A stretch of DNA of 63,658 nucleotides, the filler included, from Hyphochytrium catenoides (Eukaryota > Protista > Hyphochytriomycota): assembly GCA_900088475.1 (NCBI GenBank). It is 12 parts of 12 records of this genome, joined end to end, with 100 filler letters (N's around TTAATTAATTAA, not from the genome) between each part and the next. Parts side by side here need not be neighbours in the genome. Positions count along the whole stretch, not along the records: positions 38,228 to 41,520 come from FLMG01004317.1; 11 more parts are not named here. One strand, written 5' to 3'. The position numbers were made by a program, and so were the translations under genes. Below the pieces are notes generated by a model. That model worked only from the letters and a program-made list of their open reading frames with translations, did not search any database and was not told where the DNA came from. This document shows, piece by piece, positions 1,012 to 41,620 of the stretch. Within the stretch, counting starts at the first letter, position 1. Every line of letters starts with the position of its first letter.

Positions 1012-3019
1012 CCTTCTTTTACTCCTATTAGCTACTAAATAATATGAAATATGTATTCAGAAAAGCCAAAGTAAGACCCCGCCCTCTTCTCTGACCGGCA
1101 TTCTATCGGGTTGCCGACTTTCTTTTACTTTCTAAAAATTAAGCCTATGAACATTAGTCTCATTCCCCTACCAGGCGTTTTCCAGTCCTTCGTTGCAGAG
1201 GTTGAGGCTCACGCTTCAGTAAGCAAATGTGTGTTTTTGTTGCCTTAGTCCATGATGCTTGCCTGCTCTTATTCTTTTGATACTTTCACCCTTTTCCGAT
1301 AATGAGGACGGAGGAGGAGAGCGCGTTACAGAGTCTAGGACTTTGTAGCTCTTGACTCTCCTTCATTTTCCTCTTCTTCTGGTTCTTCCTCTTATCCTTC
1401 TGCTTCCTCTTCTGCTTCTTTTTTTTTTCCAATTCTTCTCTTCTTCTTCTTCTCTCCTTTCATTTTTCTCTATGAGTAGTAGTTGCTAAGGCATAGAATC
1501 AATAAACACTTCCACTCACCTTGTCGGTAGACCTCTATGGTAAGGACTAGCGTTTACCTCCACATCGGCTACTGTCAAGTGACAAGATAGGTTTATTTGT
1601 GGTGCCAGAGCAGCGTAGTCTCACAATCATCTACTACGGGATGGGACGGGAGTGCATGTGAAGGGTTGGTAGTAGTAGATGGGATCGAGATGACATATTG
1701 GCAGACACCACCAACTACGAGGGATGGCTGTCCCGGCTGGGGCTGGTGTCCCTGTCTCTTCCTGGCTACTTCTCTTGCTTCTTGTCAGCAAGATCAATCA
1801 TGGTGGCGGTCAACCGCTAATTCTGCCATTAACACTGTTCTGCTGCTGTTGCTGGGCATGAATGGTGAGAAAAAAGCGTTCTTGTCGATGATAGTAGTAA
1901 GAGATCAGGGCGCTGAAAACAAGAGCAAAAGCCGAAAGGGAAAGAACAAAGAGCACAGGAGTGGACAACTATGAGAAATAAAGGCAAGGCAAGAGATATG
2001 AGGAAGAGGGCGGGGATGAAAGTAGACCACCAGAACGGAATGGACACAGGCACGGAACCTACTAACCCTCATCCTCCTAACCCTAGCATATGGCGAGCGC
2101 CAGTTGATATTGACATCGCAAGAAGTGGTAGGGCTTCCTAAAAGGCCATCGGCCCACATGCTCTTACTCTATGCTCTATAATCGAATGTATGGAAGGCGC
2201 GTCGTCGTCGTCGTCAAACAGAGAAGAGATAGAGTAAGAAGGGCGACTGTGATAGAGCGAGAGAGAGCGAGGAGAAAGAAAGAGGATGAGAGAGAACGGC
2301 AAGAGAACATGACACTGCTTCAAGACAGGTCCCACACCACAGAGAAGGGGGAGAGAGAAGAACGGTGAGAGAGGGAGGAGGAGGAGATGAGAGGATTGAG
2401 GATGATAGAAGGAAATTGAGAAGAGAGGATGGGGAGAGGAAGCCAGCGAGGTTGAAGAAGACGACCAGAGGGAGCGGAAGGGAGAAAAGGAGAGAGAAGG
2501 GAATGAGAGGGGACAAGCAGGTGAGGTGACCAAACGAAGACAAGAGATGGAGCTCAGACGAGAGTAGAGTCGTCAATTCTGCTTGTCTCCTTTCCTGACT
2601 ACACTATTCACAGGCGCCCATTGCGATAAATCCAGCAGAAGAAGGACCTTGTCAAATAGCTGCTGCTGGAGGACGACATGTGAAGGAGCGGGGAAGAGAG
2701 CCCATTGGAGAGAGTTAGAATGAGGGCTAGGTAGAAGAGCAAGAGAACAGGCCGCCGCTAGTTATAGGAAAAGACGCTCCCACAAGGAAGAGAGGAGGAC
2801 AGGATACGGGAGAGAAGAGCGCTGGTAGGGCGCGAGATTGAACAAGTGGAGAGAGGGATCCAGGTAGAAAGCAAGGGAAGGAGGAAGGACAAGAAGGAAG
2901 GGAAAAATTGGAAGAGGAGAAGAGGAGACGACCACGAAGACAACGTGGAGAGGCCAGAGTCACCATTCATGCTTTCTTTGTCTTCGATCTCGTTTAGAAC
3001 TCCATCAAGCTCGGTCAGG

Positions 3020-3817: not shown

Positions 3818-6800
3818 GTTATTCTTTTATCTTTGCATCTCTCAGGTAGACTGACTCTCTCACAAGGGAGATTCCCTCTTACCCTCTATATCTCAGTTAA
3901 TAAAGTTCTTTCTGAAGTAGAAGACCCTTTGCTACTTGTGCATGTTCCCGCGAAGTCTTCCTCTGCGTGGTGCTTGTCTGGACTGAGGCCTGGCCAGCCA
4001 AGGTACAGACAGAGCACCTTCTCTTTCTCTCTCTCTCTCACTCTCTTGAGAGCTGCATCAATCTCTCATATTACAAAGGATCAGTCTTCATCATTGCCCG
4101 AAGGTGACTGCTCTGGAGAGATGTGACGTGGAGGTGAAGCGGCAAAACGACAGGATGGAGCTGGAAGGCTACATCCTTCAGGTTTTGATATCAATATTTG
4201 TCGCTTTGTTGCCCATAAACCTTGGCGATGAAGAAGAATTTGAAGAGCGGTGGACAGGACAAGTGGACGAAGAAGGCAACGACGAGGATTACTCTACTGA
4301 TGTGAAGGTAAGCCGTAGGTCTGAAGGTCGGGGAAGTCGCCGAGCGAGAGGTCAGGGAGAAGACGTGACTAGAGTAAGGGCAGTAACAAAGACAATTCGG
4401 TAAGCTCGAGATCTAGGAGGAGCAGCTCTCATGGCCGCCCCGGGACTCTAGACGGACAAGCGGGCGGACTGAGATTGGCTTTGACTTCGAGGAAGGAGCA
4501 GGAGACCTCAGGAAAGCCTCCCAGACCTTGCCAGGCTGAGTATGGGTCAGCCAAAATTGAGGCCTGCTGGCAGCAGAGACCGGAGAAAGGACAGGCCAGA
4601 ATGGGAACATGTCGCAGTGCAGAGAGAAGCCGCGCGTGAAGACGGAGCTAGAAGTAGGAGCCCGAAAGTCTGCAAAAGGAACGTTCAAGCTGCTCTTAAG
4701 GCCTTCCATACCATCTGACAACTATCCTCCGTGCCTTGTCAGTCTGTTTTGCTGAAGGCAAGGCACTGTTGGCCATAAAAGAGCTGGCAACAGTAGATTA
4801 CAGCAGGCTCGATGATGTCTGTCCCGCCATTCCTTCTCCTTCTTCATCCTTCCTCTCTCCTTCCCTTTCTTCCCCGCTCTCTCCTCTTCTCCCGCGTCTC
4901 GTGGTGTTCACTGCCCTCTGTTCTTCATATTATCGCTCTTGGAAAACTCTCTGCTGTTCTTGAGTCTACCCTTCCGTGAATTAATGGTAAATATAATAAC
5001 AGCGCATGTTCCTTAGCTAGCTTGCTCATGAGGGGTCGCTCTCTATCTACTTTTGTTCCCTTTATTAGCTGATGTCCTTGCTGTTCTTTCTCCTTCCTCC
5101 TCTTATGTCTGCCCTTTTGATTATTATTGCCTCCATCTTATAAGCCTCTAACCTACTCCTCAACTAGCACCTGCCGCTTGTGTTCGCCTCTGCTCTAGCT
5201 CCTATTGCACTCTCTTCTCTTATCTTGCCGAGCCCCTGCACCATTACCCTAACTCTCCTAACTACCTCTTCCTCTAGCACTCCCTTCACTATTGAACGAG
5301 GTCCCATTCCCTCAGTATCGAGTGTAAGAAGAAGCTAGCTCTCACAGTGTGATCAAAGCATCTTGGTCTCTCGTTGCCCTTTCACTTCCCTGATATCTCT
5401 CTTTATGCCCTCCTCCTCCTTCGTCCTTTTTAGGTTTGTTTTGTCCCTTTTCAACCTTGGTTTCGCTCGATTGACTCCTCCCACGTGGTCTCTCCCTCCT
5501 TTTTGCTCCCTAGCTGGTTTGTCGTTGTACCTAACTCCATCATTGTCTACATTCCCTCACCTCGCTACGGACATCATACATCCACTTTCCATTCCTAATC
5601 TCTCTTGCTCCCTCCTGCCATCCCTCCAACAAATCTCCCTCCCACACCGCCCTCCTGCTTTCTCTATGTCGTCGAGTCCAACCGCTTATCTCTTCTTCCT
5701 GTTCCTCCCTCTTTCTCCTGGTACTCATGTTCTTTCATGATTGCAAATGCCTTGAGCCGGCTACCATGCCGTCCTTCTTACGCAGTATCCCTACGTCCTT
5801 CTCAACCTACACATAGTATCTATATCCTCTTGTCCCCCTGGTTATCGAGTAGTTTTTCGGAAACCAGCCCCGCCTGTGTGCCTCTCTGCCCCACCATTTG
5901 CCAAGCAAAGTTCTCTAAAAATCACACGTGTTTTCTTCCCGGAACAGCCTTCTCTGTTCGCTTCCGACAGCTACGTTTAAAGAGTGACATCACATTCTTC
6001 CTATTTATCGTCTCATCTCCTTCCTCCCAATAGTTTATACCAAGAAGTCCCCTCAACTTTCTCTCATTAAAAGGAATAGAGGTCTCTCTTTCCATTAGCT
6101 CTCCCTACAGGTTTCCTGTTCCTAACCTATATCTCGTGTTCACTACTTTGATGGGCGACGACCAAGCATCCGGCAGTATTCCTTTTTAGGGTGTCTGGCT
6201 CTCTCTCTCTCCGTTGGCAGCCATATTTTTGACAGTTTATCGTCGATGAGTGACGTAAACCCTAAGGTCTCATAGGAAGGGGGCAGAGAAAAGAAGTAGA
6301 GCTCAATAGGCAAAGAATACTGCTGACAGAAACAACACACTTTTTGTAAGGATAAGAATCCTTGACGGAGCAGACGGATAGAGATCATGGATAATATATT
6401 AGTACATAGAGAAGAGATTGGCAGCAGCTGCTGGCTGTTCTCCACTACAGGGTGAATATCGTGAGGAGGATAGCAGGATAGTATGCGTTTTTCTTGTATG
6501 GTGACGGAAAGAGCAAATGCCGATCATCTCTTAGTTCGTTCGCGCCAGCACAACCGCGAAGCGCCTACAAGAAGCCCCGCAGCATGAGCATTGATGCAGC
6601 TAACACGGACAGACAGTACCCTGCTTACGATGGAAAGCTCCCTGTCATCCTAAGCTTCGTAAGAGGTGGGATGTGTAGCTTACCGGCAATTAAAACATCT
6701 AACGAGCATTTTTCCGTCGCTTTTGACACTGTCTGTAGGCACAAGCAAAGAAGCATGCCTTTTTACTCCTCTGTGTATTACTCCGTCCTCCCTCTCCCAA

Positions 6801-8848
6801 ACATGACACCCAAACGGCGTCAGTTCGCTTTACTCACTCTGTCTCAAGTTGGAGGAGGTTTTGGGTTCGGCAACACCCTCCCAGAGCTTCTTGATAACTT
6901 TCCCCTGGTCGGTGCAACTCTCCTAACTCTTCTTACCATGGTCCTATGGCAGCACTTTGACCTCTTCCTGCACGAGACAAATGTGTCTTCATGCGACAAA
7001 GCTGAAATCTAACTTTGTCTGCTCTTTATTATAGGCATACAATCAGTATAAACTTCTTCCTGAGCTCATGAAAGCGGTAGAGTTCGGCGGGGCTGCAGCC
7101 AACGCAAGGGCCCAATCGGCGGAGGCGAGTTAACAACAAAGCGTCGTGCTCGATCATCTTGAACTCTTGCGCAACCAGTGACAACCAAATGAAGGGACCG
7201 GTCAAAGATAGATTCTAAGTGCTTCCATTGAGATACCTGACCTCGAAGTACCAACCTTGCCCATTGATCATCGTGGTCAGACTTTCCATTCACGCAATTA
7301 CAATATTTTCACAATGTTCACAATGATGAGTGTCGGGTATTGATTTTCTTCCCCCAAAGAAGAAATAGAGTTTTCTATGCCTTCTTCTTCGGATGGAGAA
7401 ACATGATCCTTCCTCCTCTGATAACGGCTGTGGAGAAGAAAGAGATGAAAGAGACCAGGGATCTTGTTGTCTCTTCCTTTCTTCTTCTTCTTCTTCTGAG
7501 TAGCAGTAAAAACAAGGACTTCATCGTTCTTGCCTGGGCGCGCGGTGGCTGAGCCCACCAGTAGAACTAGTACCCTGTATTCTATTTGTTCAAAGATCTT
7601 GGGAACAAAAGGACAAGCTAAAAGAGCTAGTAGGAAAAGATACAGAACCCTCGTCACAGTTCTTCTAAAACGGTAATTGGCTGACTTTGGTGACTCATCG
7701 GCATCCAGCATAAGATCTGTAGCCAAGCAGCCAATCATCGCAGCCAACCAAACGGCTATCGAACCGCGACCGGACTCATAGTCAACCTGGTAGTAGAATG
7801 GTTTAGTCTTTGGAAGATTCATTATTATTTCAGTCCCTTTTGCACTCGACCTTTGCTACTCCACCTCCATTTGTTCAGAGAAAGACGTGCTGGTTCCACT
7901 TCCTTTTCCTGCCAAACCCGCATACAACTTTTATGGATGGTTTTCCTGGTCATTTTAGAGCTACCTTACTTTTTTCGGAGTACAGTGTACTATATTATTG
8001 TTATGCTTGCCTTCGGGAGATAATTGATCTGCCTACAGTACTGTCTCTAGAGCGATAACTTGTTATACATAGCAGGTATCATCCACTATTTACCATCCCA
8101 AAGCCGGTGCACGACCTCATTGGAGGACTATTACTACGGGAAACTAAGAAAAGGATGTTCTGCATCCACACGCTTGCATACGCCCTTTCCCCGAAAAGGT
8201 TCGACGCGTGTTTCACCTTTCCCCACTATTTTTCTCTCACCCTGACTAGTAGTAGTATCGGTGGATGTGCTTCTATAAAAACAAGTGTAGAAACTACTTG
8301 CCCCTCGTCTCTCCCTTCACAAGTTTTTCTTTCCAAGATTCCGTTAGATCCGCTTCCCCCTGCTCTCTCTCTCTTTAACCATCTCTAGCTGGCTCCAGGT
8401 CAATACAGTTTAGCGAATCTCCAAAACCTGCATATATACCTGCGACCTTCTATGACATGATTGCCATGATAGATTTCAGTAGAATTTCAGATTTGATGTC
8501 GGGCGCTATCGGTCCGCACGGGGATTTCAGCCATACTTACTTCACGTTCTCACATATCGGCCTTTGTAGAGAGGTAAAGAAACTCAAGAGTAATGGAGCA
8601 AAGACACCGTTGATCGAGGTTCCTGAGTCATCCTTCATTACGCCGTTTCCTTTCCACTTCTGAACCCAGCCTCAGTTCATAGCATTCCGAACTTGCTCGT
8701 CATCACCTTGCGGCTCCTATCTGCTTCACTAACAGGAGTCTCTGCAGCGCCTGCCGCTTCACTGACATTAGTGGAGCTCAGTCCGCAAAAGGAGGAGCGC
8801 TTTGTTTCTTCTTTATAAAAAAAAAGAAACGAAGTAATCACCAAGACT

Positions 8849-12025: not shown

Positions 12026-12131
12026 TGGGGGCCAAGTCGAGTGTGAAGAGAGGGAGAGGAGGAGAGAGAGTGGGAGAGGAAGGAGGCAGACAGAGAAAGG
12101 AGAGAAGAAAGAGAAGTGGCAAAGACACGGC

Positions 12132-12188
<57 letters not shown>

Positions 12189-37846: not shown

Positions 37847-38362
37847 GTTGATACTCTCTCTGTCTCTCTGTCTCTCTCTCTCTCTTTCTCTTTGTTTGTT
37901 TTGTTGCTGGCTATTCCGTTTGTTTCCTATCAATCATCCTCATGGGCATATTATCCTCTCTCTCTCTCTCTGCTTCTCGTCTTACCGCTACTAGCATCTC
38001 TCTGTTCTCACTCCATTTTTATCCCCCTCTCTCTTTGTCCTCTCTCTCTCTTTGTCCTTTTTCTCTCTCTCTTCTCTCTCTTCTCTCTCTTCTCTCTCTT
38101 CTCTCTTCTCTCTCTCTCTCTCTCCCTNNNNNNNNNNNNNNNNNNNNNNNNNNNNNNNNNNNNNNNNNNNNTTAATTAATTAANNNNNNNNNNNNNNNNN
38201 NNNNNNNNNNNNNNNNNNNNNNNNNNNCTGCATATCGAAGGGAGTTATGTTGCAGCGGATGGGTAACAGAAATATCAAAGGCATTTGAGCCAGAATTTTA
38301 TTTTGATCATAATATAGAAAAAAGAAAGAAAAAAGCTGCGTGAGAAAGAAGGCAGAACAAAA

Positions 38363-39242
38363 ATGGCCGCGCGACGAAGCGCTAACACCCGAAAGCCGGC
38401 GAGACAATTCGAACGTTTGGATGGAGACAGTCTACCATCATTTGCTGAAAGGAAAGCGACAAAAAAGAAGCAACTGCCAGTGCTCTCCAGAAGCGATGTC
38501 ACAGAACTTGTTGACTATCTTACGCGTACTGAGATTGAAGCTGGGCTAGGTAGAGGAGTTGCAGCCATATACAGTCAAGCGTCTGATCAGGCAATGCTCA
38601 ATGGGGAAGGAAAAGTGTCAATCGCCCAAATTCGTCAAGCAGTCAAGGAGGACCCCCAGGCAGTGGCCACCTTAGAAGGTGCCGTCATCAAAGGGAGACC
38701 AGTTTTTGACGCGGCTATGGAGCGTTATGAGAAGGTATACCGTAAGAGCGTGACCCCACCAACTGCAGAACAGAAGCTACAAAGAAAAACAGAGAAGTGC
38801 AATGAACCGAGAGGTAAACCAAATGTTCAATGGTTGTATCATGAAAAGGGTAGAGGAAACAGCTCCAGAACTCATCTCTGAGTGCCTTGTAAATTACGAT
38901 GATCCCGATCGCCACTTTGAGGTTTATAGAAACGCTCATAAAAAGGATTTGCGTAATCTGGCCTATCTGAAAGAGTTGGAGAAGGGCCATCCGCGCCGAG
39001 CTGCCGTGATCAAACCACGTACTCATATTTCTGACCTACCGCAGGCTTTGAGAAGCTACCTTGATGAATCATACTCGGAGTACGTAAATTATGAGATGGA
39101 ACTTAAGGCCCTTAGGAAACTGCTCAGCGCCACTCGTGAGAGTAGGTCCAAGGAACTGCATCGAGAGCGTAACAGTAAGCGGAGGTTGTCATCCTCTCAT
39201 GGTGAGACCATGGATGAGGATTATTACTATGAAGACCTGTAA
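38363..39242 (+). CDS. Hypothetical protein (about 290 aa) split by a one-base frameshift
   Basis: ORFs 38363-38881 and 38802-39242 fuse if one A is removed from the A-run near 38785, giving QKLQRKQRSAMNREV. Confidence 0.5.
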
Positions 39243-39730
39243 ATAATGCTAGATCGTGGCCTTAGCGGATTCATACAAAGATCTCCTAAGCCTGAGAGAC
39301 GCCATTACTCGTAACGAGGCAAGGCCGTCTGAAGGGCAAGCTTAGGATAGCGGATAGTGCGTCTCTCATTGCACTTGTGTGGTGGCAAGCGCAGTGCCCT
39401 TATTGTCGTCTTGCTCCTCCCAGGTCCCTAAATGCTGAATGGAAGTAGTGACCCCATTCTATGCAAGGGCCTGAGGAGACCTTAACAAGGCTGTGCCGTC
39501 GTGGCTGACAGAATAGCCTTCTTTCTTGGCTTGCAAGTTCGAGGCATCGTTCCAAGAATTATATTCATGTGTTGAGCTATATCCTCTTATGCAAGGGGAT
39601 AAAAGAGAGAAAGCGCTTCGTTTCTGGAGTTGCTTTCTCTTTTTTCTGCGAGCAAAGGATTAGTCGATAGCAAAACCCATTACTTGCGGTCGCTTGACAG
39701 CGAAGACACGTGTCCTGTCATTCCCCAGGT

Positions 39731-41220
39731 CTACTTTTCTCCATCAACCAGAGTCTTGCCTCTTTTTCGCAGCACTTTAAGGATCAGAAACACAATAGCA
39801 AGAAGTCCGACTACGAATCCCACAACCACGGCCACAATCTCCAGAGTGGAAAGCCCGCCAGACTTCGGTTGCAGCGGCACAGGGTCCCCAGGGCACTTCC
39901 ATGAGTCATCACCTGCCGCACAGATTGGGGGCTGATTGCTACTAGTGTTGAGATAGTCCTGGACCGGAACCGCAGTAGGAGGAAAGCAGGGTATGGATGT
40001 ATTACGAATGTCCCTGTCGGAACACCTGAATTGAGGTACGGTATTATGCAACGCAAAAGGCCACTGCTACTCACAGGTTCATATTCCATGGCAACAAGCC
40101 CAGGAGGCACTTCAGATTGGTGTTATTCCTGAGGTCCCTGCAGATCGGTATCAATTGTAGTAGTAACAGTTGTTTAGAAAGCAAGCAAACAAGGAAGCAA
40201 GCAAGGATTCACTGTACTCACAGGCGAGTTAGACTCGAAGGAAGCTCAATATTGAAAGTTTGAAGTTGGTTGTCTCTGATACTCCTAATAGCAGTTGGTG
40301 AGACAATTTGGAACTTCTTTCTGATGTAGTTTATATAATAAGATGGCTCACAGTACTCTTAAGCCTCGTGGAAGTGAGGTACTAAAGGAAGCAATGTTGT
40401 TCATAGCCAGATTCCCTGTTGCAGATGGAACAAAAGTGAGCCAGCTTTGTAAAAAAGCTGCCACATCAAGTACACGTCACTTAGCATCCTTACAAATATT
40501 CTAAGCTTGATGGAAGGTGAACCTGATACGAGGAAAGGTAGTTACGCTCGAGGTTCCTGTGAGAGTGCTCATGTCAAAGCTCCCTTATATATTTCCTAGG
40601 GCAATGAGATCTTACAAGACTTCCATCCTTTCCGGTAACACCGCCTCAAATGACAATAGCTGGTTATTATAGGCAGTTCTGTTGGGGGAGGTGTACAGAG
40701 TGAACAGGGCATGACTCTGATGCCAATCGGCTCAAACTCGTTTCGAAACTTACAGGGTTTCGAGTCTTGAGGGTAGTGTGACAGAAAGTGAGGTGAGGTT
40801 GTTGTCAGAGATCATTCTTTTATACGAAGGGGCGTCGGTTAGTATCAATAACCACTAGGAGAGCCTTAAGTAGGTAGCTGTTTAGGTCGGCTTACAGTGA
40901 GGTGACATTCGTGACAGAACCCATGTCATCACAGACTCTGGTAATCTTGAGCTGATCATATAGCCACCATAGAAAAAGAGAGATTGCGGGCTGCCAGGTT
41001 GATTGAATACTGCCTCTACGCAGCTTCCATCATCAGCAATGCTTTTGACACACATGACGTTGGATTGGCATTTCGTCGCGGTCAGTATTGTTTGATCCGG
41101 GATGCATCCAGTCGATGCAACGGTGCGCCCATAGGTCTCACCATAGACAACAAGGTCCTTATTGCGAGCCAACACACATACCAGTACCACCAAAGAAGAT
41201 AGGCTAACCCGGATGATCAT
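39731..41220 (-). CDS. LRR receptor-like type I membrane protein: signal peptide, Cys-rich cap, 6-7 LRRs of 21 aa, TM helix, short tail, no kinase domain
   Basis: LRR exons: 40754-40816 MISDNNLTSLSVTLPSRLETL; 40616-40678 TAYNNQLLSFEAVLPERMEVL; 40494-40556 NLERNYLSSYQVHLPSSLEYL; 40352-40415 NLAMNNIASFSTSLPRGLRVL; 40222-40284 SIRDNQLQTFNIELPSSLTRL; 40075-40137 DLRNNTNLKCLLGLLPWNMNL. TM: IVAVVVGFVVGLLAIVFLILKVLRKR. Apparent 1-nt indels are present. Confidence 0.85.
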
Positions 41221-41620
41221 TGTATAGTAAAGAAACTCGCGTTGAGCGATAAGGGCTGTTTGGAATGATAGAAAATTGAAAATATGAGAGGAGTTTGCAA
41301 CTCTCTATAGAGCCAGGAGAAAGATGCAGACTCTACCAACAATCCCAGAGTAGACAGTGATGAATGATGAATGACGCCCTTTAGAACCTTGTAGTTTAGA
41401 ATAGCAACTTCACCGTCAGAATAGTCATAGTACTTTTATTTAGTTACTAGTTGGAGAAACTAATAAGCGGAGTAACTACATACTAGACGTTATGCATAGC
41501 CTACGAGTACTGTCGTCTCTNNNNNNNNNNNNNNNNNNNNNNNNNNNNNNNNNNNNNNNNNNNNTTAATTAATTAANNNNNNNNNNNNNNNNNNNNNNNN
41601 NNNNNNNNNNNNNNNNNNNN

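Follow-up and report, generated by a model that had tools for sequence, protein, structure and literature searches.

A stretch of Hyphochytrium catenoides DNA of 63,658 nucleotides, filler included (the window), contains on its minus strand what is probably a spliced gene, or a very recently damaged copy of one, for a small type I LRR membrane protein whose repeats are carried by an array of symmetric exons. The gene lies in the piece at 38228-41520 (FLMG01004317.1, a 3.3-kb contig), which holds two genes in convergent orientation. From the N- to the C-terminus, its product would begin with a signal peptide and a Cys-rich module, continue with about 6.5 LRRs of 21 residues and finish with a Cys-rich cap, a TM helix and a cytoplasmic tail of 15 residues that would carry neither a kinase nor any other domain. 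The LRR solenoid would correspond to the exon array itself, with one repeat per 63 nt and with phase-2 introns splitting the Leu codon that closes each repeat. As assembled, however, the gene has no continuous reading frame, and two frame defects, both missed in the preliminary description of this locus, have to be accounted for. The features of the gene are as follows.

41220-40896, minus strand: exon 1, 325 nt, with an ATG at 41220 and a 112-codon ORF that has a hydrophobic start followed by a Cys-rich module
40918-40896, minus strand: partial LRR at the end of exon 1, reading SVTNVTSL in the LRR frame and ending CT/GTAAG like the other LRR exons
40816-40754, minus strand: LRR exon 1 of 6, 63 nt, phase 2-2
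40678-40616, minus strand: LRR exon 2 of 6, 63 nt, phase 2-2
40556-40494, minus strand: LRR exon 3 of 6, 63 nt, phase 2-2
40415-40352, minus strand: LRR exon 4 of 6, 64 nt when counted from the only available AG
40284-40222, minus strand: LRR exon 5 of 6, 63 nt, phase 2-2
40137-40075, minus strand: LRR exon 6 of 6, 63 nt, phase 2-2, an irregular repeat (NNTNL...LLP, shifted by one residue)
40025-39731, minus strand: last exon, with a Cys-rich cap (four Cys, two NTS sequons), a TM helix and a basic tail of 15 residues; TAG stop at 39733-39731
39838-39779, minus strand: predicted TM helix of 20 hydrophobic residues, mean Kyte-Doolittle value 3.3 over 19 residues, followed by KVLRKRGK
40895-40026, minus strand: span containing the seven introns, at 40895-40817 (79 nt), 40753-40679 (75 nt), 40615-40557 (59 nt), 40493-40416 (78 nt), 40351-40285 (67 nt), 40221-40138 (84 nt) and 40074-40026 (49 nt)

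The exon coordinates, lengths, splice dinucleotides and phases given in the preliminary description were all recovered, and only the strand had to be added. The central observation of that description, one 21-aa LRR per symmetric phase-2 exon with a Leu codon split at each boundary, was likewise borne out, with five exons of 63 nt and one of 64 nt. Intron donors are either GTAAG or GTGAG (four of each), acceptors are AG throughout, and every intron is in phase 2 relative to the LRR frame. The codons formed across the seven junctions are CT/A, CT/A, TT/G, TT/G, CT/G, CT/G and CT/G, so that each junction encodes Leu. The same is true of any donor joined to any acceptor (49 of 49 combinations), which upholds the earlier claim that a 63-nt exon can be dropped, doubled or swapped without loss of frame. 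Retention of an intron has the opposite consequence: for each of the seven, a TAA or TGA follows directly after the junction Leu. The 84-nt intron that separates LRR exons 5 and 6 also contains an (AAGC)n microsatellite of 6.8 copies (40179-40205).

Aligned with one another, the six exons give one 21-residue LRR each, of the form x[LI]xxNx[LI]xS[FLY]xxxLPxx[LM]xx, in which N5, L14 and P15 are invariant. The last repeat (40137-40075) departs from the others in having one additional residue ahead of LP. LRR proteins are recognized by tandem units of 20-30 residues with the motif LxxLxLxxNxL (Pfam clan CL0022), and six such units of 21 aa are present here, with the motif spanning the junction Leu. 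Additional evidence for the nature of the repeats came from a search of the PDB with a six-exon profile of 20-aa units, in which all 29 matches were LRR proteins. The best match was LRRTM (3e-4), followed by repebodies, TLR2/7, VLR and SspH1/2; matches that extend over the full repeat were to TLR7 and SspH1/2, and these were weak. Pfam returned no LRR match for any single exon, the 20-aa exons being too short to score.

A pattern of this kind could in principle be a coincidence of composition or a non-coding repeat rather than a gene, and the failure to find a homologue or a Pfam match would be expected in that case. The statistics speak against it. Four open, in-phase AG-63 nt-GT stretches carrying the motif were observed, as compared with 0.005 expected per random piece (same-composition random sequences; maximum 1 in 2000), and the two-exon pattern was observed twice, as compared with 0.00 in 100 shuffles. 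Moreover, the exons are regularly spaced on the same strand, in the right phase, between an ORF with a putative signal peptide and an ORF with a TM helix, and their profile finds LRR proteins only. An origin of the array by chance is excluded, and the broader proposal that the locus is not a gene at all is barely credible.

The two ends of the gene support a single-pass type I membrane protein lacking a kinase, with the signal peptide and TM helix predicted from hydropathy; the preliminary description had also placed the protein at the cell surface without a kinase, and at the level of sequence the hydrophobic N-terminus, the TM helix and the 15-residue tail agree with it. The product of exon 1 begins with a hydrophobic, signal-peptide-like stretch at residues 2-16 and has Cys at residues 39, 51, 57 and 67. 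In the last exon the residues that follow the TM helix, KVLRKRGKTLVDGEK, make up a basic tail of 15 residues, beyond which there is no further in-phase ORF. Sequons are confined to the predicted ectodomain. No ROC-COR domain is present in either terminal exon, and the gene stops 15 residues past the TM helix. The protein would serve as a binding module at the cell surface and, having no signalling domain of its own, would depend on a partner or co-receptor for signalling.

The Cys-rich flanks gave no Pfam match to the recognized LRRNT and LRRCT caps. For the module in exon 1, the ESM Atlas offered PAN_1 look-alikes with a score of 0.91 and 148 shared features, which is below the level at which such matches are usually true; a PAN/apple identity was not confirmed by Pfam, by a PDB sequence search or by a single-sequence fold (pLDDT 40). 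In the PDB the last exon met with nothing significant, and such matches as it had were confined to type I proteins, in their TM or juxtamembrane segments.

The first of the two frame defects is in LRR exon 4, where the G run at 40414-40416 contains one surplus base. Read from the canonical acceptor, the exon reaches a TAG after 11 codons; read from 40414, its LRR frame is intact. There is no alternative acceptor or donor that would rescue the 64-nt exon, and skipping it altogether would keep the frame. The second defect is in exon 1, where the frame opened by the ATG arrives at the GTAAG donor in phase 1 rather than phase 2. A frame change of 1 nt is needed between approximately 41040 and 40896, at a site not localized more exactly. 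At the DNA level, the last 23 nt of the exon (40896-40918) share 78% identity with the opening part of the first LRR exon (40787-40809). Because this identity is accompanied by the sequence SVTNVTSL and by a CT/GTAAG boundary, the true frame at this end of exon 1 is probably that of the LRRs, and the one-base shift would therefore lie upstream, inside the exon. An internal intron that would mend the frame of exon 1 was also considered. No canonical pair of sites of plausible size preserves the Cys-rich ORF; a weak GTCACG donor at a CT would keep the 21-residue period but is unsupported.

The neighbouring gene on the plus strand (38363-39242; about 290 aa) belongs to no Pfam family, and Pfam searches with its ORFs gave nothing meaningful. 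A single additional base, within an A-rich run at about 38785-38800, divides it into two ORFs of 172 and 146 aa. Among 5.8 billion proteins its sole homologue is P0001 (291 aa, 73% identity), which is uninterrupted; comparison of the two gives a dN/dS of about 0.26, with dS ranging from 0.7 to saturated. Through P0001 a Logan contig of 15 kb was reached, L001 (run SRR28521206). Its positions 12131-12185, within a reverse-transcriptase (RT) ORF of 745 aa, match the opening 55 nt of the piece (38228-38282) at 100% identity, and L001 is therefore taken to derive from the same species or a close one. Directly upstream of P0001, at 6627-7451, L001 also has a degenerate copy of the C-terminus of this RT. 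Since RT sequence adjoins the gene both on the piece and on L001, the P0001-like gene sits beside a retroelement at both loci. Named relatives of this RT come solely from the sponge Ephydatia muelleri (35-49% identity), which hints weakly at an animal origin; nothing pointed to human sequence. L001 also has an ORF at 1380-2914 (minus strand) with a polB-exonuclease-like motif (YDTEA) and one at 4211-4911 (plus strand) with a prim-pol-like motif (VLDIDN). Both motifs were judged by eye, and they suggest that L001 may carry a Polinton- or virus-like insert.

Conservation between the two loci extends to non-coding DNA. The stretch at 39267-39650 (plus strand), which sits between the two convergent genes, is 82% identical overall to L001 8295-8669, rising to about 90% in the core, and identity is 85% over the 79 nt that lie upstream of the neighbouring gene's ATG. 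Both non-coding stretches are more conserved than the synonymous sites of that gene's coding sequence. The intergenic stretch folds well (z = -4.3) and closes with a hairpin of 14 perfect base pairs (about 39599-39650), after which comes a run of T. It has no match in Rfam; a structured RNA and a bidirectional 3'-end element are both possible identities for it.

The frame defects raise the question of whether the LRR gene still makes its protein. If both are true mutations, the layout is real but the copy is decaying, and the locus would yield no full-length protein, or only an exon-skipped form with five repeats. Two independent defects within a single 1.5-kb gene are what would be expected of such a pseudogene, and the surroundings point the same way: the neighbouring gene also carries a +1 break relative to P0001, a fragment of a retroelement lies at the start of the piece, and exon 1 ends in a truncated LRR copy. 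However, the pairs of splice sites are all intact, and in the LRR frame no LRR exon is interrupted and all of them keep the invariant N and LP; any damage must therefore be very recent. The dN/dS of the neighbouring gene, moreover, indicates long-term constraint. Interpretation is further complicated by the positions of the breaks, two of the three of which (the GGG in LRR exon 4 and the A-rich run in the neighbouring gene) are in or beside short base runs, in a contig of only 3.3 kb, as would also be expected of indel errors in the assembly. Taken together, the frame breaks, the intact splice sites and motifs and the constraint on the neighbour fit assembly indels as well as they fit very recent decay. 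We regard the pseudogene as a serious possibility that falls somewhat short of an even chance. Besides the lack of read-through as assembled, the points that count against the favoured reading, a gene or very recently damaged copy for a small type I LRR protein, are that single exons match no Pfam family and that no homologue was found for either terminal exon.

The age of the array was addressed by comparing its parts. In register, the six LRR exons are 27-51% identical in DNA, their identity at third codon positions is 0.35, which is near random, and no pair of introns aligns above shuffled sequence. Programs that search for tandem or direct repeats detected no exon-level DNA repeats except the partial LRR in exon 1. 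Because the exons have diverged to this extent, with third positions near random and introns unrelated, the array reads as the product of old duplications. Under the favoured reading, a single exon-plus-intron unit would have been duplicated in tandem long ago and the copies would since have diverged. Since an array built in this way consists of repeated units that are symmetric in phase 2, the number of exons could change in frame, whether by unequal recombination or crossing-over or by exon skipping, and the junction would remain a Leu.

The preliminary description went further and proposed a candidate family of diversifying recognition receptors, in which 63-nt LRR exons would be shuffled between and within genes and alternatively spliced, varying binding specificity. 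The proposal has a clear rationale: the exons are symmetric (2-2), every pairing of donor and acceptor gives Leu, the truncated LRR with which exon 1 ends resembles a relic of rearrangement, and there are precedents with the same intron phase. This part of the description found no support here, in view of the divergence of the exons, the unrelated introns and the failure to find a paralogue or orthologue in the collections searched. Within the gene there are no near-identical exons or introns and no other sign of recent shuffling, and no paralogue was detected through either terminal exon. An exact look-up of the four larger ORFs in a collection of 15 billion proteins found all four absent. 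HMMER searches with the last exon against 1.84 billion representatives returned four matches only, all of them PKD-repeat proteins, and these are spurious, reflecting a weak similarity over 31 aa that is multiplied over 20 repeats. Nothing matched the exon 1 ORF in a word search whose length window leaves out full-length kin. At the DNA level, the two-exon signature has no match in JGI metagenome contigs, and tblastn with the last exon found no relative in the same contigs. The single-exon signature is also unmatched on the related contig L001, where a different gene occupies the place at which the LRR gene would be. An actively diversifying family is thus unlikely. We think it very doubtful that the locus represents an extensive family of surface LRR receptors, kinase-less and specific to its lineage, assembled from interchangeable 63-nt cassettes in a poorly sampled eukaryote, possibly a sponge-like animal, with exon number and order varying by paralogue and by skipping. 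If such a family did exist, phase-2 LRR cassette arrays would have been invented independently for a third or fourth time, and the family would be a case of diversified recognition. The LRR gene gains in interest only if many such genes with mosaic exon order are present genome-wide; as it stands, it has a clean layout but is a single copy, old and possibly broken, and is better viewed as a well-annotated example than as evidence for a diversifying system.

There are parallels between this array and LRR genes in other lineages. The brown-algal precedent cited in the preliminary description is real: in the LRR-ROCO genes of Ectocarpus and Saccharina, 72-nt exons encode one LRR each and have phase-2 introns between them, and shuffling, positive selection and splice variants have been documented (PMC3341825, PMC11378527). 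The gene described here shares with them the correspondence of one LRR to one exon, the equal exon lengths, the phase-2 introns and the potential for in-frame gain, loss or skipping of repeats. The unit differs, however, being 63 nt (21 aa) here and 72 nt (24 aa) there. ROCO proteins are cytoplasmic LRR-ROC-COR GTPases, whereas the protein predicted here would lack ROC-COR and would instead combine a signal peptide with a TM helix and a short tail. In addition, the near-identical shuffled exons, the non-coding LRR relics in introns and the splice variants of the ROCO genes have no counterpart seen in this gene.

A second parallel is provided by Tetrahymena, which has tens of thousands of LRR exons of exactly 90 bp, with phase-2 introns between more than 96% of them (PMC6564038). 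Tandem LRR exons of equal length, an extreme bias toward phase 2 and a common junction codon are features of both systems (PMC6564038). Important differences are that the Tetrahymena unit is 90 bp (30 aa), that thousands of genes are involved, and that clonal expansions there are recent and nucleotide similarity is retained. The present case is one gene, whose exons are old and diverged and whose composition and intron structure are unlike those of ciliates (about 46% GC; GT(A/G)AG introns of 49-84 nt).

In vertebrates, the ectodomains of gonadotropin/LGR receptors have approximately one repeat per exon and introns that are all in phase 2 (Koo et al. 1991, as cited in a passage of PMC11378527). 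These features, and the extracellular position of the LRRs, are what the two have in common, but those receptors have repeats of about 24 aa and a 7-TM domain. Slit genes also have 72-bp LRR exons, with the LRRs joined to EGF and LamG domains. No sequence homology to either was detected. In domain order, with a putative signal peptide ahead of a capped block of LRRs and a single TM helix and short tail behind it, the predicted protein matches kinase-less LRR membrane proteins such as plant LRR-RLPs and animal LRRTM. The repeat is 21 aa long here rather than 24, however; no homology was found beyond the generic LRR motif, and the caps match no LRRNT or LRRCT model. SspH/IpaH-type LRRs form a class with repeats of 20-21 residues. 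The N-x-L-x-S-[LF]-x3-L-P-x2-L spacing of the repeats resembles that class, consistent with the weak full-repeat matches.

LRR exon arrays with a 63-bp unit did not turn up in the literature searched. Arrays of equal-length LRR exons with phase-2 introns are an established principle, and the gene described here follows the same principle in a different form, with a 21-aa unit and a predicted TM protein that has no ROC-COR. Few routes are known by which eukaryotes other than vertebrates could vary their recognition receptors quickly. Modular, symmetric LRR exons are one of them, and each independent instance helps to show how general this exon-modular route is.
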